In this document: positions 2,685 through 64,000 of the stretch, in pieces | How the letters are laid out: the number at the start of each line of letters is the position of its first letter | Numbering within the stretch: the first letter of the stretch is position 1 | DNA from: Podarcis filfolensis | Lineage: Eukaryota | NCBI GenBank assembly: GCA_964270895.1 | Contig: OZ185442.1 | DNA: 64,000 nt | Strand: one strand, 5' to 3' | The notes under the pieces: model-generated | Seen by the model: the letters and a program-made list of their open reading frames with translations, nothing else | Databases searched by the model: none | What the model was told of the DNA's origin: nothing | Position numbers and translations under genes: made by a program

Positions 2685-4670
2685 TCACTTCCCTGCATTT
2701 GAACGGCCCTCAATGGACAACTTGACCTCCTGGGGAATGAATGAAGGGCGGAGGAGTGGTGGCCGGGGCTCCTCCCCAGACCTTTGGAAGCTGGGGCCTG
2801 CCCAACCATGCAGAGAAACAGGATCATGGTGGGTGGATTCCTGGGGGGAGCCCACTGCCACCCCACCCTTCTCCAATGGGTTTTTCTGCAGCTCCTGGAG
2901 ACTCTCCCCACCCCGCCCAGGTCTCTCTCGGGTAGCACTCTGGGGGCTTGCCTGGGGCACAAGCCTCCCATTCAGACTCTGTAAACTGATGGAGATGCAA
3001 ACATCTCCCACCTGCAGCCTGTGGCAGGAGAGTGAGAAGAGCCGATTCGTTCTCTCTGGACTGCATGAGGACCAGCCCTGTCCATACACAAAGAAAGGGT
3101 GCTCAGGGGGCACATCAATGCTCACTTTGCTCTGCTGCTCCCCCACCACAAAATGCAGTGTGACGAAACCCTGCCAGGGACTCTCTTGGATGTCCACCAC
3201 AGTGCTGGAGTCAATCTTGAGGCCACCACTCACCTCTGCACTGCGCACAAAGTCCTGGGTCTGCAGGTCCTCCACCCTCTTTAGCTCTCCTGTGGCCAGC
3301 TGGATGATGGCTCCTTTCATGAAGTGGGAGGGTAAGTGGCTCTGGGAATGGGCACATTCCGTGTCAGGTAGTCCCTCATGGGCTGTTCCCTCAGGACTTG
3401 CACCTCCCAGGCCATCCTGAGCCCCAGGATGGAGGGACCCTGAGACTGGCCGACCATTGGCCATTGTAATGCCTTTCAGTATTTGCCGATGGCGGAGCTG
3501 CTCCTCAGGGGACTTTGCCGACAGTCTCCGAAAGTGGCTTTTCTCAGAAGTAGCAGCCACCACAAGTTCCACTGGGTTCCTCATTGACTCTGCCTTCTGC
3601 TCAGGGGGATTACGATGGGAAAGGTTTAGAGGGCTCAAACCATCCTTCTGCTGAGCAGAACAAACAGGGTAGTCCTGGGAAGCAAGCACTCCAACCACCC
3701 TCTGCACCTCCAGGTCTGTATCTGGGGTGCTGCGCTGAGACGGCACAGAGATCTCTGTTCTCAAAATCTGACTGCTTGTCAAGAAGGTACCTTCAGTGCT
3801 GCACTCTACCGTTGTCCTTGGCCACTGCCCTTCAGCCTCACTTTCCTTCGCCCCTACGGCAGACCTTTGCACCCCATTTGCTGTGACTTTAGGATCTAGC
3901 TGATTCTCCTGCAGAGACTGCTCAGTGTTTGGGCCAGCAACAGAAGCTTCAAATGATGAATAGCCTGCTGGCAGACGGGACATCTGATAATAGACTGGAA
4001 TTCGGCCCTGTGTAACATCCAGTGGCTGACCTCCAACATGGGGCTGCAGAGAGCCTGAAGGCAAAACTGAGGCACTGGTCTTGCCAAAGCTGTGGGCTGC
4101 CTGTGGAGAAGGAGCAGAGTCTTCAGCCAGGAGAGGTGCATAGGGCACAAAGTGTGGGATATGAGAGGCAGCAAGGCTGGCTGAAGAGGACAGAAGGTGG
4201 CTGGGCAGGAAGCCAGGAGGCACAGCGGCGGCATAGGGTACAGAGTAGTGTGATCCCACAAACTGCAAGGGAGCAGGAGGAAGTTGAGTGTAATGGATAG
4301 GCGAGTAGGGGATACCAGGGTGCGGGATCAGCTGCGAGGTCATACTGAAGGCTGGAGGCAGCGGGCTGACATTCACCACGGGTGAGAAGGTGGCCGGGGG
4401 CATCGCCACTTTGTACAATAAGCCGTACTGGTCCACGGTAAGACTGGTCACTGTGTCGGAGCTGCCACCAGCCTCCGTGTAACGTGAAGGTGCCTGGCTC
4501 TGCCTGCCTGTTGCTGAGCCCCGGGACCATTCCACAGAGGTCTCGCTGCCGCCACCGCCCACCAGACCCGACTCAGCCGCCCGCCCTGGCTCTTCGTTGT
4601 TGGCAGCCACCGGCAGGTCGCGCTTCTTGGGGGGGAGGAATTCCTGGCCCCGCTCCTGAGCCGCTCTCAT
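2685..4670 (-). CDS. ATXN1L: Ataxin-1-like protein, single coding exon, 661 aa
   Basis: The ORF-track frame 2685..4733 opens at a TTG. The first ATG (4670) gives MRAAQERGQEFLPPKKRDLP, matching the ATXN1/ATXN1L N-terminus. The AXH domain (HFMKGAIIQLATGELKRVEDLQTQDF...HPFFVYGQGWSSC) and the C-terminus FIPQEVKLSIEGRSNAGK are present. Confidence 0.97.
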   Translation of the reverse strand: MRAAQERGQEFLPPKKRDLPVAANNEEPGRAAESGLVGGGGSETSVEWSRGSATGRQSQAPSRYTEAGGSSDTVTSLTVDQYGLLYKVAMPPATFSPVVNVSPLPPAFSMTSQLIPHPGIPYSPIHYTQLPPAPLQFVGSHYSVPYAAAVPPGFLPSHLLSSSASLAASHIPHFVPYAPLLAEDSAPSPQAAHSFGKTSASVLPSGSLQPHVGGQPLDVTQGRIPVYYQMSRLPAGYSSFEASVAGPNTEQSLQENQLDPKVTANGVQRSAVGAKESEAEGQWPRTTVECSTEGTFLTSSQILRTEISVPSQRSTPDTDLEVQRVVGVLASQDYPVCSAQQKDGLSPLNLSHRNPPEQKAESMRNPVELVVAATSEKSHFRRLSAKSPEEQLRHRQILKGITMANGRPVSGSLHPGAQDGLGGASPEGTAHEGLPDTECAHSQSHLPSHFMKGAIIQLATGELKRVEDLQTQDFVRSAEVSGGLKIDSSTVVDIQESPWQGFVTLHFVVGEQQSKVSIDVPPEHPFFVYGQGWSSCSPERTNRLFSLSCHRLQVGDVCISISLQSLNGRLVPQASPQSATRERPGRGGESLQELQKNPLEKGGVAVGSPQESTHHDPVSLHGWAGPSFQRSGEEPRPPLLRPSFIPQEVKLSIEGRSNAGK

Positions 4671-4862
4671 GGCGCTCGCTTCGGGAAGCTGCAAGGTGGG
4701 CTGCTGCTGTCGCCTCCTCCTCCTCCTCCTCAAGGGGGTCTCCGGGCGGGATCACCTGCAAAGACACAGAGAAGAGCACAGGGGTCAGCCGGGTGGGGGG
4801 GGGCAGGCGGGCGGCTTCCGCCCGGCGGGGGGAAGGGAGCCCCGGACACTCCTGTCGCTTAC

Positions 4863-14371: not shown

Positions 14372-29852
<15,481 letters not shown>

Positions 29853-30835
29853 GCTCTGGCCCCACCCTCCTCACCCCACCTGGTTGGCCGAAGGAACGCT
29901 GGGCAGAGCGCTGTGACTCCAGAAATCCCCCCACTTGCACCATGGCCAGGGGAGCTGACGAGAGCAGCGGCTGCTGCAGAGCAGGAGGACTGGCCTTGCT
30001 CACCTTGATGAAGCATATCTCTTAAGACACTTGCTGGCTCGCTCTCTCTTCTCTCCTCTCCTGGCTGCTGAGCCACACTTGCCACAGAAGCCACGTTCCC
30101 CTTGTTTTGGAAGGGGGGGAGGGGAGGTGCACTGTGGCATGTGCGACTGTTTCTCCCCACCTGCCATCTTCTCTCCTCCGGTGGGCGTGGGCGAGTGAGT
30201 GAAGCGAGTTTTGTTTCGGCTCCTTGCTAGCCGGGTTACCACCTTCAGGCACTTTTCATCCAGAGTTCATGTTGGAAATGTATTCCAAGGATGCTGGTGA
30301 CCCTTTCTGCTTGGAGTTCCCTGACGTGGGGGGCCTTTTCTACGCTTGACTGCACACCCCGAGGGCAGTGGCTTGAGTCTGAGAAGGGGATGGATAGGTG
30401 GACCTGCTGTTCTGGACAGAAGCTCTGCTTTGGAGGATTCAGTGGTGGAGGCAGCAACGTCAAGCCCTCTTTGGCCAGTGCCTCCCTCTCAGAAAGCATC
30501 ATGATGGACGAGACTGGCTGCTCCTTCCAGCAAGTCGCTCTTCAGCGTGCCCCCACCCCAAATCTTGGAACTCCTCTTGTCTGATCCTTGGCTGTCAGCT
30601 GTGGTAGGTGGGTAGAAAGGAAATGTGTGTTGCTTAAAGATGGAAAGGGGGGGCACCATTTGCCTGCAGAAAGACTCATCTCAAGACTCCACTGCAAAGC
30701 TGCTTTCCCACCTCAGCCCTTTTCATTTCCTGAGTCTGTCAGAATCCTGGATTCCATTTGAATTCGTTCTCCTCCTGGGACGTTTGTGTTGTATCTGTAA
30801 TATTGGCACTGAAAATAAAGACCATGCGGTTTAAT
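29853..30835 (+). other. AP1G1: AP1G1 3' UTR to polyA signal AATAAA 30814-30819
   Basis: AATAAA preceded by U/GU-rich sequence. A longer UTR isoform cannot be excluded. Confidence 0.55.
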
Positions 30836-31313
30836 GAGACCTTTCCTGCTTTTAGTAGCTGGTTTTGCAGCTCCTTGCATAGATGTTGAGCAGAGGACAT
30901 TCCTGTTTTTGAAGGCCAAGATTCCAAAGTATGACAACTCCCTAAGAGAGATGTTTTCAGGGCAGAAGTCAGTGGGTTAGGGGGGCATGTGTAGGATTCC
31001 AGGAGCAGCAAAGAACGGGGAAACACTTTAGAGTTCCCATCTATGATTGGCTAAAGTTCCTAAAGCTCATTGCCAGCCTGTTTGCCTTACAGAAACAGAA
31101 GGTGTGTCTGCACCCGCTGTTGGGTTGCGTGATGGGAGAGGGGGAGCCAGGCAGAAGCACTTCAAGAGCCACAGGAAGTCCTCTAGACATACACTATCCT
31201 AGCAAATGATTCGCTGCTGAGGTCCTGTTGACTGGAGCTGTGGTCAGCTGCCTCTCTCATCTACCCCCCAGTGAGACTTGATGTGTGTCCAGCTGGCAGT
31301 GCTGCTTTCATGA

Positions 31314-31415
31314 AGGACAGGATGAAATTGAGGCAGTGGGGAATGGGGCTTTGTGCTCTCACAGAGGACAGGATGAAATCAGGGCAGTGGGGAATGGGAT
31401 TCTTGTGATTCTCCA
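31314..31415. repeat. Two-copy 51-bp tandem duplication
   Basis: AGGACAGGATGAAAT..GGCAGTGGGGAATGGG starts at 31314 and at 31365. Confidence 0.85.
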
Positions 31416-31970
31416 GCGGACAATTATTATGCAAAGCTCACCAGCTGGATTGCTGGAGGTGGAGCTTGTGGAGTCCAAACAAGATTCCGAAGAAGTCTGC
31501 TCTTCATCACCACAGCAAAAAGAGCCTTGGGGATCCCCGAAGACTAAGAAATGTATTTGGTTTGAGCTTCCTCTTCCTCATAGGATGAGCAGAGTTGGTA
31601 GTATGGCAAGACGCAGATGGCAGCACCGAGGACTCTTTTCCTGTTGCAATCTGAACCTGTAAGATGATGGCTTCTGTCACCTCCCTTACCTCCCCCCCCA
31701 CACAACTAATGATGGCAGGTCAGACAGCTGGGAGTTGGGGGTTGGCAAGTCCTTTCGTCTTGAACAAACAAGTATCCCTTCAGGGGACACAGAGTTGAAG
31801 TAAGGTCACCTTTCCTTGCAAGGAGCTCAAAGTAGTACTGAAGGGTGTCGCCCCCCCAATATCCTCAGAGCAACTCTGAAGGAAAGGATAAGACTTTGGA
31901 GTGACTGTCCAAAGTTAAGTCATGGTTGTAGTGGAGATTTCAGCCCAGATTCTAGTCCAACCCTTTAACC

Positions 31971-32470
31971 CATAGGTTTTCAACTTTTGTGGGTCTACGG
32001 CTCCTTTGACCAACTACATTCTTTCTGTGGCACCCCTGTGGGGCTCAGAAGCCCAATTATGTCACCCCTTGCCTGCAGAGCTGGCAGCCTCTCACCCTTT
32101 TTTTGAACACCCTCCCTTATGGAGTGCTCCCTCAGCCTCCTCTCCTCCCCCCTCTCCTTGGGAGTCCTCTGGGCAGCTGCAGCTACCACCCCTGGTCTCT
32201 GAGCTGCCCCCCTCCGCCCCAAAAAGAAGTCCTGCCTCACCCTGCCCCACAAGGGCCTGGGAAGCACCCCCTAGCTAGCCCCAGAGGCAGCATTCACCTG
32301 GGGAGCTGCTGCAACAAACAGCTGTGCAAGGCCCTGGGAGGCAGAGACGCAAGAGGGCATCAGAGGAGGGAGGGAAGGAAAGAGGCACAAAGGCCAGTGT
32401 TGCCCACGGCACCCCTTGCCATCATTCAAGGCACCCCAGGGTGCCACAGCACACTGGTTGAAAACCACTG
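31971..32470. mobile_element. Non-autonomous hAT (Charlie-like) element, 500 bp
   Basis: TIRs CATAGGTTTTCAAC / GTTGAAAACCACTG with a perfect 8-bp TSD CTTTAACC (31963-31970, 32471-32478). Confidence 0.85.
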
Positions 32471-33614
32471 CTTTAACCACTCCACCATCTCCTTCCCTTG
32501 TAAGAGGCAGCCAGGAGCTCTGATGACTGTGCTGGAAATGAGATATGACCCACCTGTGAACTCTACAGCTGCCTTTATCATGGGCTACGCTGTCTGAAGC
32601 AATTGAACCTGTGGCCATCTAGGTGTTGAGGATGATGGGAGCTGGGAGTTGAGCATCCCCGCCCCTCAACTGAAGGATCTTTTTACACAGTGGCCCATCT
32701 TCCTCTCCCTCCATTTCCCACACTGGAAGAAGGTCCAGACTTATTGTGAAGGGAGAGCCTATGTGGGATAACTTAACTATGTTGCTCTTTTGTTAACACA
32801 GGCTGGTACCTAAACCCCAGTCTAACTTGAGGTGTTGCACGTTGAGTATAGGATACCTCTATGCCTGCAGGAGGCAGGGTACAAATAGGCTGAAAAACAC
32901 AATTCTTACAATAATTGTGCTTTCTGGCCCTTAAAGTAGGTATAGCAGAGGGTGGCAGTCCTACTGGGTTGGGTATTGCTCAAAAAATTGTCACATTAAA
33001 GCAATGGCCTTCCAGATGTTGCTGTACTAGAATCATCATTCTTGACCATTTAGCATGTTGCGTGGGGCTGATGGGCGAACTACATGTGGAGGGCCCCTGT
33101 TTCCCAGCTCTTTCTTCAAAGGTTTCTCAAATCTCGCCTTCTGAGGGGTGGGCATGGGACTAAGCTACAGAAAAAGTTTTATTGGACAAATGTTTTTGGA
33201 TATGCAGAATTTCCCTTTGGGGACCACAGTAACTGCCAGGCTTTGGGAGACAGCCTTCTATGAGCTGTTGAGAGAATGTTGGTGTAATGTGTCATAAAAG
33301 CTCTAGAGTTTCAAGGAAGAGAGTACTAAATGCTCAGTTAAATAGGACCTCAGGGAACATAGGTGTTCCAAGGTGTTGCAGTTCTTCTGTGTGTATTGCT
33401 GGAAATGCAGTTAAATGCACCCCTTGGAAGTGAGCTGGCTTTTGCTTGGAGAATGAGTTCCCTCTTCCGCCTCATCACTGCACATCACTGTCAGGTGTTT
33501 TTTGTGTGGGGGGGGGGGGGAGATGTTTCTCTACATTGAGGCGGTAAAATGCAGCAAACCCAAAACAAGGAAGTCCAAGATCTCTAGTGTCTTTTGACAT
33601 ACGCATTTAAAGTG

Positions 33615-34259
33615 AATTACCAAGGTAGCGATTTTATTGTTGTACAAAAGTATAATATTCCATAATGAAAACAATTTGAAACAAGACTGCACAGAACATC
33701 TAGTAGAAGCATTTGCCTTCAAGGCAAATGTGTAACTTCCTCATCAAGAAAGCAGCTCAATGAGGTGAATGGAAGAAGGAATGAAAAACGTTTTCTCTGG
33801 CATTGTAAGAAGGGGTGGGTGGAAAAAGACACAGATTTTGCTTTCTATAAGAGGACTGGAGTTTTTTCTGGGGGTACCAACAAGATGGCACTTTGCCCCA
33901 AGGCATATATTGAAAGTCTGGTCAACGGTCTCAATCTAAAGGCATGATCTGAAAGGAAAAAGGAATGCGGAGGGAAGAAAGCAAGTGCTGGTTGGTGATG
34001 GGACCAAGTTGGTCTTCTTGCCATTACAGGTGACGTTCTATATTAAAGAGGAGCAGAGAGTAGTCTTGTTAGACTTTGCATCAGTATGTATGATGGGAAA
34101 GAAATGGGAGCTTGGAGAATGTTTACAAAACACTGAAAGTAGGGTTTAGACAGAAAGTGATCACTGCCACCACTGTACATGGTTCAAAGGCACTGCTTAG
34201 CTTGGCTTAATAGGCTGCTCCATCCTTCTCTCCCTTCAACTCAGGCAGCAGAGGCCAAG
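33615..34259 (-). other. MARVELD3: MARVELD3 3' UTR, polyA signal at 33633-33638 (minus)
   Basis: TTTATT on + at 33633-33638, about 620 nt after the stop. Confidence 0.55.
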
Positions 34260-36182
34260 TTAGGGCTCACAGCTGTGTGATGATGGTTTTGCTTGGAGGG
34301 TCCGGACAATCTTGAAGCCACGGACAGCCAACACAACGGCAACAGCGAAGGCCACAATGGCTGCCCCAGCAAAGAAGCCCACAGCGATCTCTGCTCCATG
34401 CAAACTGCAGCCAAAGCCCCTGTAGCCTTTGCTCTGGTAGAGGTTCTCTCGCTCTTTGCACAGAGAGGAGGCATAGATCTCGTGAAGGCGATGGTAGTAG
34501 AAGTACAAAGCTGGCACAAGACCAATTGCAATGGCCACATCCAGAATGGCCTCCGCTATCAGCCACGCTGGGCAATGCCAGGGCACTCGGAAGAGACTAG
34601 CCACAATTTGGAAGCAGGCAAAGGCCATCAGTGCCCCTCCAACTGCCATGGCCACCTGGGCCGGTGGCACCTTGAGTTGGTGGAACTGGGCATCCAACTG
34701 CTGTGCCTTCTCCCCGTCAGCTCCACTGAGGCCACTGTAGGCCCCGCCGTATTGGTAGTAGTAAATGCTCCCCAGACTGAAAAGACCAGTGTAGCCACCT
34801 GTCGAATTGTAGGAGACTGAGCTGCAGATGACAATCAGCATGCAGAGGAGGAGCTGGAGCTGTTGGCAGCAGGCTAAGAAGAAGCAAGGGCAGAGGGGTG
34901 CTGTTAGTGCCATTTCTCTAGTGCTGTGGGGCCCTCAGCCTGTGTGGAAGATGGAGCACTTGGCCCCTCCAGGTCCACTCATAGAGGTCAGCTTTGTGGG
35001 TAGATTGGATCCCAAATCTTACTGGGGTTAAGGGAGCATATCTGAGCAGGCAGCGACTATCCTTCCTTCCCTGTTTCTACCAGGGCATCTTCTGCCCCAA
35101 TGCCACATTGAAAGACTTTTCATTCCTGGGGTAGTGACCTCAGAGCTCCCCTCATGTTTCACCCTTAGTTTAAGGCCAGGGATAGGGAACCCCAGGCATC
35201 AAATATGGTTTCCTGGGTTCCTCTACATGGCTTTTGGGACTTCCCCAGGCCATGCCCCATGCAAGCCTCACCTCACGCCCCTGCAGTGTTTTACCTGCTG
35301 CAAGAATGCCCCCTTGAATTCTGATAATTTATCTTGCTCCCCTGGTGGAGACACGGGGAGAAAGGGATGTGTGAATAAATTAACATTTGTTGCCCCACCC
35401 ACACTGGCCATATGGCCCCTGTAAAGTTGACTAGAATGGAATATGGCCTTTGGGCTGAAAAAGTTTATTCACCCCTCTTTTCGGCCGGGAGGAAACTGGG
35501 GTGACCTGGCAGCCTCGTGGGTGCCACCCCACTCCCTGGAGGGAGCTTGTGCTGACCACAGATGCCTGAGGATTGACGGCTGAGCAGCACTCACTCACTG
35601 CACCCCTTGCCAGCAAGTTGTGGGGCCACAGGCCTGCCCCTCGCGACTTTTGGGCAGCCTGCGAAGAGGGGGTGGCAGCGTCTGGCTGGCAAGCACCCCG
35701 TCCCCGTGAGGCAACAGCCCTTTTGCCCGCCCCATCTGGGGAAGCTGCCAGTGGCTTCGCCCACACCGAGCTTACCAGCGGGCAGCGCCGGGGGAGGAGG
35801 AGGAACTACAAACACAACCCCCCCATCGCAGCCCGAGCGCCTCATTCCACGAGGGGAAGGGGGCGTGTCGTCGACATCGTACCGCCCTGACCCACCCTAT
35901 CGCGGGCCAGTAGGGACATCTAACCCGGTCCGGGCCCTCACCTCTGGCCGTGCACAGGGCGCGACATAGCGGTTTGTCCAGAAGGCCGCCTCCGCCTCGG
36001 GCCTCGGCAGGGAGGTCCAAAGAGGCCAGTATGGTGCCTCGGGAGGGAGGGGGGCGGTGGTGCTGGTGCTGGTGCTGCTGCTGCTGCAGCCACGGCCACG
36101 GCTGCTCTCCTACCGCCACCACCGCCGGCCGGTCCTGACCCCAGTCCCGCGGCTTCCCGGGTCTCCTCCCGGCGTCCGCCAT
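34260..36182 (-). CDS. MARVELD3: MARVEL domain-containing protein 3 (tight junction), 284 aa
   Basis: Exons 36182-35942 (MADAGRR...LCRALCTAR, donor AGAG|GTGAGG) and 34873-34260 (acceptor TTAG|CCTGCTGC) join as R-A-C-C-Q. The MARVEL domain includes [27 protein letters not shown] and [13 protein letters not shown]. The start codon is less certain than the rest. Confidence 0.9.
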
Positions 36183-50541: not shown

Positions 50542-53500
50542 ATGGAATCCTACCTGATCCACGTGAATGGCAAGACGTCCCCGCCCTCCATCCTCGATGT
50601 CCATGTCAGCCTCAATGGCGGGAAGGGCCCTTCTCCGGGCAAGGGGAAAAACCGCAAGGCCCACTGGGCCGTCAGGGCTTCCGAAATGTCCAAGAGGACC
50701 TTCAACCCCATCCGAGCCATTGTGGACAGCATGAAGGTGGAGCCCAACCACCAGAAGCCCCTGATCTCTCTGTCCATAGGTAAGCAGGTGGGCTATGGAG
50801 GGACCATGAGGTGGGGGCTCCTGCCAATGCCCCACCCTCAACTGACATGGATTCCCCTCATGTTTCCCCACAGGGGACCCAACTGTGTTTGGGAACCTCC
50901 CAACAGATGATGAGGTCATCCAAGCGATGAAGGAGGCCCTGGATTCTGGGCAGTATAATGGCTATGCCCCCTCAGTAGGTAAGTCCTGGGAGACGCTTTC
51001 AATGTATGCAGCCCCTATTTTGCTTTTGCTGCAAAAGTCTAACATGCCAACTCTTCTGGGAATCCTCTACACAGGTTACTTGTCTTGCCGGGAGGTGGTC
51101 GCAGGCTACTACACCTGCCCAGAAGCCCCCTTGGAAGCCCAGGTAACTGACTGCTGCATGCATTGCCATCTGACCTTGATGCTTGATGTTGCGAAAATTA
51201 GCTTTTGCAAACCCTGGCCAGCACCTCCGCAACTCACTGTACTGGAACTGGAGCTTGCCCAGAAAGGATCCTGGGCCTGGAATCTTTATTAGGAACCCAG
51301 GAAGCTGCTTTATACTGAGTCAGACAACTGGTCCACCTAACTTGGTATTGTCCACACTGACAGGCAACATCGTCTCTCCAGGGTTTCAGGCAGGGAGTCT
51401 CTCCCAGCCTAAGTTGATGCCAATGGGGATTTAACCTGGGACCTTCTGTATGCTAGCAGAGACCCACCCCCTTCATTCCAGCCTCCTGGCCAGGAATTTC
51501 GAGAAAGAGCCAGTGAAGAAACCTTTCCCTCCCACCTCCCTCCCCTCCTGTGCTTCTTCTGGGCTAGTCTTTCCTAGTGGTTGCTACCCGCCAGGCTCAC
51601 GGCTGCCTGCTCTGCTCCCTCTTCCTTTGCAGGATGTGATCCTGACAAGCGGCTGCAGTCAGGCCATTGAGCTGGCCCTGGCTGTGTTGGCCAACCCTGG
51701 GCAGAACATCCTGGTGCCACGGCCTGGTTTCTCCCTCTACAAAACCCTGGCTCTGTCCCTGGGCATCGAGGTCAAATTCTACAACCTCTTGGTAAGCTGG
51801 GGCAGGAGGTGGCGCAGCATACCCTCCCCACTGCCTGCAGAGAGGCATGGCACAAGCAGGAAGACAAGCAGGAGCTCCCTTGCAGGGCTCTGCCTGCCTC
51901 TCCACAGAGCTCAGGTATAAAGAAGGGCTGCCTGTGGACCCGGGTTCAAGGCCTGGGGACCTGTTCTCCATCTCCCCTTCTTTGGACTGGGCCCAAACCC
52001 AGGCTGGGAGGTGTTGCAGGGCTCTTGGAAGAGAAAAGGGAGGTCAGTATCCTGACCAGTTGACAGTTGCTCCAGCCGCCATCCCTTTTCACCTGCCCAG
52101 GACCTCTGGCCCACCCTGACCCCAGCAGGAAGCCTGGTCCATGGGCACCAGGCTGAGGTCCTGAAGTGGGGGCATTCCTCACCTCTTCCTCCTTTTTCTT
52201 CTCCCTGCAGCCAGAGAAATCGTGGGAAATTGACCTCAAGCAAATGGAGTCGCTGGTGGATGACAAGACAGCTTGCTTGATTGTGAACAACCCATCTAAC
52301 CCCTGTGGCTCCGTTTTCAGCAAAAGCCACCTCCAGAAGATCCTGGCAGGTGAGGATCCCTCTGTGTGTGTGTGTGTGTTTCTATCCCAGGCCTTGCTCT
52401 GGGGAAGAAACAAGAATCAGAGGGCTGACTAGATTTCTTTCTGTCTGTCTGTCTTTTCCTGCTCAGTTGCCTCCAGGCAGTGTGTCCCCATCTTGGCCGA
52501 TGAGATCTATGCTGACATGGTGAGTGAAGCAAAAGCACCCCTGGCCCCTCGGAAGGCCAAGCACAGCAGCTGGAACCCTTCTTCCCAGGAGAAGCCCCCT
52601 CCCACCTTCTGACACATGGCTGGGAAAGCAGGGAGTGGGGTGGGTCTGCCTGAGGTGGCTTGGTCTTCTTCCCAATCACAGCCAGCTGCACTAGCATCCC
52701 CCTTACCTGCTTTACACGCCCATTAGGTATTTCCATCACTACTTACTCTGGTATTCCTCCTTCTGCACTCCCTCCCCCCCACTAGGTGTTTGAAGACTGC
52801 AAATACGAGTCCCTTGCAAAGCTCAGCACCAACGTGCCTATCCTCTCATGTGGAGGCCTCGCCAAGCGGTGGCTGGTGCCTGGCTGGAGAATGGGCTGGA
52901 TTCTCATACATGATCGCAGGGAGATCTTTGGGAAGGAGGTAAGTTAGCAGAACTCGGTGCTGCCCTGACTTTCTGCACCCGGTCCAGGAGCTGGTGCGAT
53001 GGAGGAAAAGAGTTCATGCCCCTCACCACTTCACAGCCACCCTCTGAGCCTGATTCATGTAGTCTTTGTGCCCCAAGGCCCACTGTCTGTGCTAGGATGT
53101 CAAGGAGGCAGTGTCCCCTGCCTCCTGGGTCTGGTCAGTGAAAGACTGCCCCAGATGCCCCCTACTCCAAATGGGCTCTGAACAGGAACAAGTTGGTTTG
53201 AGTAGCAGCTGCTTCTTGAGAGGGCCAGGAGATCCCTCTCCCACTTCCTGTGCCCTCTACACCAGTGCGAGTTCTGCACAGGTTCCCTCCATTGTACCCA
53301 TGGTAGGATGCAGACTCTCTTTCCCACCTTCCCAGCTCTGCCTTTGGTTTGGGGGCACACTCAGCCACAAGAGGGCTCTCGGTGTGACTGCGGAACAGGT
53401 TGGGCGATTTCACTCTCTTAGATCAACTTGGGGATCAGGTAGTGCCCCTCCCTACTGAGCTCTCTCCCTCCCCTGTGCATCTTTCAGATTAGAGATGGCC

Positions 53501-60249: not shown

Positions 60250-63200
60250 TAATCTTTTTTTCTGTCATTTGATCCAAGAAGTTAATCTCCCTGTACATTG
60301 TGTTCACAAAGCCAGTAATGTAAGATAATCCGTTTCGCAAATATCACAGTTAGAGGAGGAATTTTGTCAAGCATCAGGACTGGAAGAAAACCATTGGGTC
60401 ATTTTGTCCAACGCCCCACCATGAGCTCACCCAACTGTGAGCTCGTCCACACTACAGCTTGCTCCACCGCTTACCCCTACGGAAACCTGTTCTTTACCAC
60501 TGAATCAGAGCAAATGGCAACTGGGTTTATTCAGGTTGATGTTTGCCCCGATTCAGTTCCAAAACAGTGGGTTTTCACAGGGAAAGCAGCAGGCCAAATA
60601 GAAAAATAGTCAGACCTGTGCCTAGAAAGCACGGGCCTAGTGGAAAACCTAGGCCAAGGGTGGGAAGTGTATACAAAAGCATGGGAGAACTTGGATACCT
60701 CTGTTCTTCCAGACTTCTGTTTTTGGAAACATAGATCCCAGGATCCAGTAATTAATCTGGCTGCTCTGCGACTCACCAAGCTGACCACTACCAGGGCCCT
60801 GACATGGCTCAATTGGCTAACTGATTGGGAAGGCTCTGGGAATTTTACCTATATCTCCCTGCAGGGAAATAGTATGGTGCATTATATTCTGATACCCACT
60901 AATTTGATGCCCTACGTGGCTGAGTTTTACATAGGTGATCCTATGCTCAGTGACCATCTCCCTCTATGTTGCAAACTTGTCTTTCCATTGAGGAAGTCAG
61001 AACAGTTAATTAATCCATCCCCCCAGGAACCAAGTCTCCAGCAGGATACGAGTTAACGAGCATACACTATCTCTTTTCCACAGCTTGGTGAATTCTGACC
61101 ATGTGATTCATTTGTTTTCAGTAGAGAAAGGTGAACTTTCCTCTGTTGTTGGAGTCACTCGGTTTGAGGAATTTATTGACACTCTAACAACTGAACTGTC
61201 TCATTTACACTTGCACAGGCCACCTAAGAAGAGGGGGATTGACGATTGGACTGACAAAGAAATCATAGCAATTAAAACCGAGGTCAGGAGAATCTATAGA
61301 GAGTTCAGAGAGACAGGCAGCTCTCGATTGCCTGACATTTACTTCTCCAGATCTCGACAACTTAGGGAAACTATCCAGCTCAGCCAGATAAGATATAGTC
61401 AGGCATGTTGGGATACACTACTCTCAACCATCCTAAAGAAAGATTATAAGAAATTTTGGAAGGCTGTAGCAGACTCCCCACAGATACAGGATGATTCGCT
61501 GGCGTTGATTCCATCATTGTCATGGGTAAAGCATTTTAATGCGGTTTTTCTTCGATGACTGTATTCCACCTGATAGTCAGGACCATGCCAATTTTACTTT
61601 CGTGGATGAGTGGGCCCCTGTCTCCATCACCAAAGTTATAACGTTAATTGACCAGATGAAAGCAGGAAAGGCTGCTGGCCCTGATGCTATTCCATCTGAA
61701 TTGATCAAAGCCAAGCCAGAGTGGTGGCCTCTGATACTAGTGGAACTATTCACTATGATAGATAGATCTGGTATCATACCTAACTCATGGCAGCAATCTA
61801 TAATTATCCCAATCTTTAAAAAAGGTGACAAAAAGCTGACATCAAATTATTGGCCAATAAGTCTACTGTCAAACATTGGGGAATTGTATGCCAAACATCT
61901 GTTAAATAAACTAACTACTTGGTTGATGAGAATAACATCATAGGTCCAGAGCAGGCAGGGTTCAGGCCAGGGAAATCTATTTTACGCAACTGTTTGGTGT
62001 TATCTTATTTAGCCACTAAGTACAAGCGACTTCATAAAGAATGTCTTTATGTGGCCTTCCTTGATATCAAGGCTGCTTTTGACACTGTCAACAGGGGGCT
62101 GTTATGGTCCAAATTGGAAACAATGGGCCTGGAACCTAGATTACTTTACTTGATCAAAAAGCTTAACACAAAGAACACCTGTCGTATAAGAACAACACCA
62201 GGGAATGTAATGACAGATCGTGTCGTTATAAACAGAGGTGTAAAGGGCTGTGTACTCGCTCCCTCTCTTTTTAATCTTTTTCTTAAGGACCTCGCTTCTT
62301 TACTAAAACAGGTGGATGCCCACAGCCCAAAACTCAATGCATCAAGCATTCCCATCCTTCTATACGCAGATGATATGATTTTGCTTTTACGGACAAGAAT
62401 TGGGCTAAAACATTTGTAAAATTACTGTATTGACTATCTGTCCAGAATGAAATTGTGCATGAACTTTGATTAAGGCAAAATAATGGTTTTGGGGAATTCA
62501 CACATATAGCTGGGTATTTAGTGGAAAACACATCCAGCAGGTATTCGAATTCAACTACCTGGGAATCACATTCCATAATGGGCTACTATGGTCCTCGCAC
62601 CGTGCAACGGCAGTGAATGCCAGTAAGATGTCTATGCAGGCCATAATGCGTTTCTTTATAACAAGAGGTAATTCACATATCCCTTCTGCCCTCAAGGTCT
62701 TCAGCGCCAAAGTTATAGCTCAATTGCTCTACGGCATTCCAGTCTGGCAGCCAGGGTAGAACGAGTGCAGGCAGCTTTCCTTTTTAAGAATTTTGCCGTC
62801 CCACATTGTGTAGCCTTTGCAGCCTTGTGTCTAGAGGGAGGTCAACACAAGGTAGAGACCATAGCTGGGCGAGATTTCTTACATGCTGGTTAAACATCTG
62901 CCTCACAACAGATAAAGATCCTCTCCTTAGTGAAGTTTTGCTAGATCCCTTTCTTTCCCTAGGGCTACAACGGGCTACCTTTAACATAAAGCCTAGGGCT
63001 ACCTTTAACATAAAGGTACAGCAACTTGGGCTGTCAGTGGAATTTTGCAATCGATGTCCCCACCATCTGCCAGGGCTATAATAAAGACTAGGTTGTGGGA
63101 CATTGAACTCCAGGAACTAACAGCAGCAGCAGAGAAAACATGCTCCCCTCTTAACTTTCAACTTTCTTGGGCACATGAAATTAACCACAATTATCTTGAA

Positions 63201-63683
63201 TTTTTGCTTAATCCTCAAGAAAGAAGAGCATTTTTGCTGGCCAGGTTTAATTCAAATCCTTCAAACCTCCTATAAGGAAGGTTCTCGAGAATGGTGGAAG
63301 GAGAAAGAATTTGCCCATGTGAAGACCATCAGGTGGAAACTCTTACACATATGGTTCTTAAATGTAAACTATATGTTGATCTCCGCCAGCAGTTCCTAAA
63401 TCAACTCTGCATCCCCAAATGGAAACCAGAGTTAGAGGTCATATATTTTCTATTTTTGGGGAATAATCAGGAGCTCACCAAGTTAGTGGCTAAATATCTT
63501 TATCTGGTTTTTGTTGTCGAAACACACTGCAGACGTCTGATCTCCCTGGAGACATGTAATGTTAGACTGCTCTGCCTCTTTCATCTGACAAATGTTTTGT
63601 GTCACTGGGAAGGCGGTAATTCTGTACTAATTTGCTATGGATGTTTGTATGTGATGCCAATAAAAGGTTTGATGATGATGATG
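60250..63683 (+). mobile_element. Degraded non-LTR retrotransposon (APE endonuclease + RT + C-terminal Cys/His), possibly RTE-X-like
   Basis: EN fragments FTYISLQGNS..HY and SDHLPL. RT fragments EQAGFRPGKS, FLDIKAAFDTV and LLYADD. C-terminal CPC..ETLTHMVLKC. It ends AATAAA then (TGA)n. Many stops and frameshifts; the 5' boundary is uncertain. Confidence 0.85.
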
Positions 63684-64000
63684 AAAACCTATTGGACACA
63701 CCTTTTAGGCACAGGACAAACAAAGTGTGGGCAAATCCTTAGGCAATGCGGATGCCTGTCCTACATCAGTAGCCACCAGCCGGATGGCTGAACAAGAACA
63801 AAAGCCCAAGTGCGGGGAGGAAGCCTCAGCCTCTGTGCTTGGCAGTAGAAGGAGCCCGGCCCTTCCTGCCCATCCATCACTGCCCATTCAGTTACCCCTG
63901 GGCTCTCAACCTCCTGGAGCAGGCCTGGCTGCTTTTCAGTCTCCCAGCAGAAGGTTACTGTTGGACGGAGACTGATGTCTTAGCAGGAAGGGTTTGGTTT

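Follow-up and report, generated by a model that had tools for sequence, protein, structure and literature searches.

Contraction of the AP1G1-MARVELD3 interval and the probable ancestral loss of PHLPP2 in squamates, seen from a Podarcis filfolensis locus

The gene PHLPP2, expected between AP1G1 and MARVELD3, is missing from that place in a 64-kb stretch of the genome of the lacertid Podarcis filfolensis (64,000 nucleotides of contig OZ185442.1, assembly GCA_964270895.1, without runs of N; hereafter the window), and the same contracted junction is found in five other squamate families. We consider it very likely that the PHLPP2 locus was removed before crown squamates diverged, the present spacer being the mark left by this ancient disappearance. 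The empty slot is real but ordinary, and the squamate loss of PHLPP2 is already in print: a 2025 study (PMC12002173, PNAS, text to Fig. 7E) states that Squamata have lost PHLPP2, as have caecilians and, on two occasions, turtles. What is added here is a locus-level picture of synteny, covering six squamate families and three outgroups.

The window carries four genes in the order ATXN1L (minus strand), AP1G1 (plus), MARVELD3 (minus) and TAT (plus). This is the order and orientation put forward in a preliminary description of the same DNA, and the domain and homology matches bear it out. The corresponding order on human 16q22 is TAT-MARVELD3-PHLPP2-AP1G1-ATXN1L. The interval where PHLPP2 is expected, together with the two 3' untranslated regions (UTRs) that converge on it, comprises the following features:

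29853-30950, plus strand: AP1G1 3'UTR, with AATAAA at 30814-30819 and conservation to about 30930-30950
30836-33632, no strand assigned: spacer and expected PHLPP2 site, with no PHLPP-like coding sequence, collinear in patches with the spacer of the amphisbaenian Rhineura
33633-34262, minus strand: MARVELD3 3'UTR, its AATAAA on the minus strand reading TTTATT at 33633-33638

The AATAAA at 30814 is the sole polyadenylation signal hexamer in 29881-31200. The polyA signals at 30814 and 33638 lie 2,813 bp apart, in agreement with the 2.8 kb of the preliminary description, and the distance from the AP1G1 stop codon to that of MARVELD3 is 4,407 bp.

No trace of PHLPP2 was recovered from this DNA. 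Neither Pfam nor tblastn detected a coding remnant of the PH/RA, LRR or PP2C regions anywhere in the 64 kb, so that both the absence of the gene between AP1G1 and MARVELD3 and the failure to see any PH, LRR or PP2C exon, as first described from the letters alone, stand after the searches. The four longest spacer open reading frames (ORFs) have no Pfam match, and Rfam found nothing over 29800-34300. Zero tblastn matches to the window were obtained with the 3' exons of chicken and crocodile PHLPP2, and likewise with full-length teleost PHLPP2 and with gecko, turtle and bird PHLPP1. These same queries match the chicken and crocodile loci, with E values down to 0, and thus serve as positive controls. 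In outgroup versus squamate blastn comparisons, only the MARVELD3 coding exon aligns; neither the PHLPP2 3'UTR nor the old intergenic DNA was recovered. As for the queries, PHLPP1 and PHLPP2 seem to be merged at 50% protein clustering, a full-length tetrapod PHLPP2 representative was not returned, and the survey of protein clusters yielded generic PP2C clusters only. In the last exon of chicken PHLPP2, PHLPP1 is about 50% identical, as against about 55% for teleost PHLPP2. One stray tblastn match, between an intronic crocodile ORF and the Elgaria spacer (3e-6), lacks a counterpart in chicken and was taken for a shared repeat rather than a PHLPP2 exon.

The junction was then compared across annotated MARVELD3 loci, taken with 10-kb flanks from separate chromosome-scale NCBI assemblies of five other squamate families. 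In each of them MARVELD3 is followed directly by a convergent AP1G1, at 6.2 kb in the amphisbaenian Rhineura floridana, 4.5 kb in the anguid Elgaria multicarinata, 3.2 kb in the skink Tiliqua scincoides, 4.9 kb in the gecko Eublepharis macularius and 3.6 kb in the agamid Pogona vitticeps. With the window included, the sample spans Lacertidae, Amphisbaenia, Anguimorpha, Scincoidea, Gekkota and Iguania, and the conserved order and orientation of the flanks, together with the contracted spacer (3.2-6.2 kb), hold in all six. The closest comparison is with Rhineura: the two spacers are collinear end to end as short blocks, with 81% identity in the AP1G1 3'UTR and 73% in the 3'UTR plus last exon of MARVELD3 (33307-34887).

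Outside squamates the slot is occupied. The chicken has TAT-MARVELD3-PHLPP2, with a convergent PHLPP2 of 1445 aa (RA_3, LRR and PP2C) situated 5.5 kb downstream of MARVELD3. In Crocodylus porosus a PHLPP2 of 1312 aa is convergent to MARVELD3 and lies 4.1 kb downstream, and in Emys orbicularis one of 1300 aa, also convergent, lies 9.9 kb downstream, its last 32 residues standing at the edge of the locus. Since PHLPP2 still occupies this position in chicken, crocodile and Emys, and since the human order is the same, the squamate adjacency of AP1G1 and MARVELD3 is derived. Furthermore, because the six squamate families are empty at this position and the outgroups are filled, the slot would have been emptied before crown squamates diverged. 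The preliminary description had spoken of a lineage-specific change; the lineage concerned is all sampled Squamata and not a single lizard.

These observations can be accommodated in a simple scenario. The amniote ancestor would have had PHLPP2 downstream of AP1G1, in convergent orientation to MARVELD3. The whole PHLPP2 locus, some tens of kb, would then have been removed ahead of the split between the living squamate lineages, most likely through a single segmental deletion or a few of them, possibly following inactivation of the gene. AP1G1 and MARVELD3 would thereby have come to lie with their 3' ends 3-6 kb apart, both genes and their 3'UTRs being left intact, while the paralogue PHLPP1 would have been kept. 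The spacer would subsequently have evolved neutrally, and the lacertid line would have acquired a 500-bp hAT-type miniature inverted-repeat transposable element (MITE). We infer a single ancestral event, and deletion in preference to slow erosion. The retention of PHLPP1 was seen directly in squamates, e.g. in Eublepharis, Liasis, Hemicordylus and Heteronotia, by a homology search with reedfish PHLPP1. PHLPP1 shares the RA-PH-LRR-PP2C architecture of PHLPP2 and is a plausible back-up; it differs in residing at another locus, and nothing PHLPP1-like is found in the window.

Several points weigh against an early loss by a single event. Beyond the AP1G1 3'UTR, the spacer is alignable only between the lacertid and the amphisbaenian, so that one shared breakpoint is a matter of parsimony and not of demonstration. 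The squamate sample contains neither a snake nor a tuatara locus. In the MARVELD3 protein searches, snake, anole and tuatara were absent among the named matches though many other squamates were present; this gap could reflect a length filter, divergence or absence. That the gene was lost and not moved rests on the phylogenomic profiling of PMC12002173, the sole exclusion of a relocated copy. Finally, PHLPP2 does not figure among the 53 genes that lack annotation in each of the 30 RefSeq squamates (PMC13005343, BMC Biol 2026), and a gene of that name could therefore be annotated in some squamate. The omission could equally, and plausibly, follow from the intact Chelonia mydas copy which that screen required, given the turtle losses.

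The first of these points leaves some room for a stepwise course, in which PHLPP2 was inactivated and its remains then disappeared piece by piece, through numerous small deletions that arose independently in separate squamate lines. The variation in spacer length, from 3.2 to 6.2 kb, would fit such a history. However, every detectable exon is gone in all six families, and the spacers measure at most a tenth of a typical PHLPP2 locus. That each line should have been eroded completely, on its own and to much the same size is less parsimonious than one removal in a common ancestor, and we regard the stepwise course as unlikely, even if it survives better than any of the other alternatives.

Less probable still, and by a good measure, is a relocation, in which a rearrangement carried PHLPP2 out of the slot and the gene persists at another place in squamate genomes. 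That the 53-gene list does not contain it speaks for this, as does the fact that the squamate genomes were examined at the fetched loci only. On the other side, the gnathostome-wide profiling of PMC12002173 gives the gene as lost in Squamata. The flanks show no rearrangement, every squamate seen having the block ATXN1L-AP1G1-MARVELD3-TAT intact and collinear, and in the literature that names PHLPP2 together with lizard or snake a squamate PHLPP2 gene is unreported. An ancient loss, most likely by deletion, is preferred to a displaced copy.

The remaining alternatives can be given hardly any weight. An assembly collapse or misjoin that dropped PHLPP2 from the slot has nothing in its favor beyond the short distance itself. 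Runs of N are absent from the window, the Rhineura spacer is collinear with an empty MITE site, and the same junction recurs in five other squamate assemblies produced by different projects. A collapse is not credible because of this recurrence and of the collinearity with Rhineura, and the junction, on the strength of these sequence comparisons, is correctly assembled at the spacer of the window. The preliminary description had set loss or relocation beside an assembly collapse; loss is what finds support, through PMC12002173, and the collapse is excluded. Just as negligible is the idea that reptiles originally had AP1G1 next to MARVELD3 and that PHLPP2 was inserted in other lineages, a state that the preliminary description had named as fatal to its own claim: it could be linked to Dermochelys and platypus, but chicken, crocodile and Emys, with PHLPP2 in the slot and in the same orientation, contradict it, and the human 16q22 order matches these outgroups. 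Indeed, that the 10 kb downstream of MARVELD3 contain no PHLPP2 exon in Dermochelys (fetched locus 15771-25770) and in platypus (fetched locus 22890-32889) is uninformative, as the Emys PHLPP2 starts only at 9.9 kb. The Dermochelys result could correspond to one of the two published turtle losses (PMC12002173) or just to a longer spacer.

Our results and those of PMC12002173 concern the identical gene and clade, but differ in kind. That study relies on profiles of presence and absence, and its main text makes no use of the word synteny, whereas here the emptied locus, its flanks, the outgroups and a search for relics are described. A closer likeness is found with IL34, lost between SF3B3 and MTSS2 (PMC13005343): in both cases the flanks are conserved, the contraction is restricted to squamates, the outgroups are intact, and no remnant is found. 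Unlike IL34, PHLPP2 stands outside the 53-gene list, and the present case is drawn from assemblies. With its filter for intactness in Chelonia mydas, PMC13005343 may overlook genes that turtles have lost as well. It is quite conceivable, if somewhat short of probable, that PHLPP2 is a further squamate-wide clean segmental deletion that the catalogue missed through this sea-turtle filter. If this were true, the losses of PHLPP2 and IL34 would hint at clustered deletions on their block in stem squamates; both genes presumably belong to one ancestral chromosome block (human 16q22, chicken chr11).

PHLPP2 has long been regarded as an AKT/PKC phosphatase and a tumour suppressor. The preliminary description had presented it as an AKT/PKC phosphatase, a designation that is dated and disputed by PMC12002173, where PHLPP2 is argued to be a pseudophosphatase without activity on Akt and where its loss is noted although AKT and PKC are kept. 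An order of about 11,000 species without PHLPP2 fits the view of a dispensable pseudophosphatase, a point that is already in print. The clean excision, the intact flanks and the retention of PHLPP1 bring supporting detail only to that view. If the loss is as we propose, squamates, turtles (where the gene was lost twice) and caecilians would provide natural knock-outs for a non-catalytic role of PHLPP2.

The 3'UTR of AP1G1 deserves mention in its own right. About 1 kb of it retains 68-83% identity across the six squamate families, far above the neighbouring spacer, which suggests regulatory constraint on this region.

Two further features are found within the spacer:

31303-31398, no strand assigned: tandem repeat in two copies, with a unit spacing of 51 bp, 45 nt aligned and 84% identical
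31971-32470 (500 bp), no strand assigned: non-autonomous hAT-type MITE, with target-site duplication and terminal inverted repeats

The second is the 500-bp hAT element announced in the preliminary description, whose extent proved exact. It is bordered by a perfect 8-bp target-site duplication, CTTTAACC, at 31963-31970 and 32471-32478. Its terminal inverted repeats, which start with CA(G/T), match at 12 of 14 positions (CATAGGTTTTCAAC versus CAGTGGTTTTCAAC), and these ends are reminiscent of MER5-type Charlie ends. In the Rhineura spacer, the blocks that flank the MITE site are only 34 bp apart, which is what an empty site should look like. Because the site is empty in Rhineura, the insertion is younger than the lacertid-amphisbaenian split.

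The coding features on either side of the spacer are the following:

2688-4751, minus strand: ATXN1L single-exon ORF, given as a stop-to-stop frame with the coding sequence inside; Pfam AXH 7e-40, ATXN-1_C 1e-16
14372-29852, plus strand: AP1G1 coding region, recognized by an Adaptin_N match, a gamma1-adaptin appendage match, the translation of the last exon and orthologous AP1G1 in five squamate loci
34263-34835, minus strand: last coding exon of MARVELD3, with the MARVEL domain, 99.5% identical to Podarcis muralis MARVELD3
about 35943-36182, minus strand: first coding exon of MARVELD3, N-terminal region, from tblastn at 80% over 80 aa
50846-52429, plus strand: TAT exons (partial gene), inside ORFs 50846-51289 and 52157-52429, with Aminotran_1_2 in 52157-52429

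For AP1G1, the Pfam Adaptin_N match falls in the ORF 14372-14749, which holds the first coding exon, and the ear-domain exons lie inside 28731-28991 and 29247-29393, the former matching the gamma1-adaptin appendage of the PDB at 1.5e-28. The last exon ends in ...NNFPTQSWQ*, with the stop codon at 29850-29852. For MARVELD3, the Pfam MARVEL score in 34263-34835 is 29.5 bits, below the gathering cutoff of 32.8 bits. The window contains one MARVEL-domain exon, matching mainly entries named isoform X2; a second, alternative MARVEL exon as in mammals was sought in the spacer and the rest of the window and was not found. Farther along the plus strand, at about 61010-63788, a run of long ORFs resembles part of a long interspersed nuclear element (LINE) reverse transcriptase. 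TAT, the upstream neighbour of MARVELD3 in the window, holds the same position in chicken, Elgaria, Tiliqua and crocodile.

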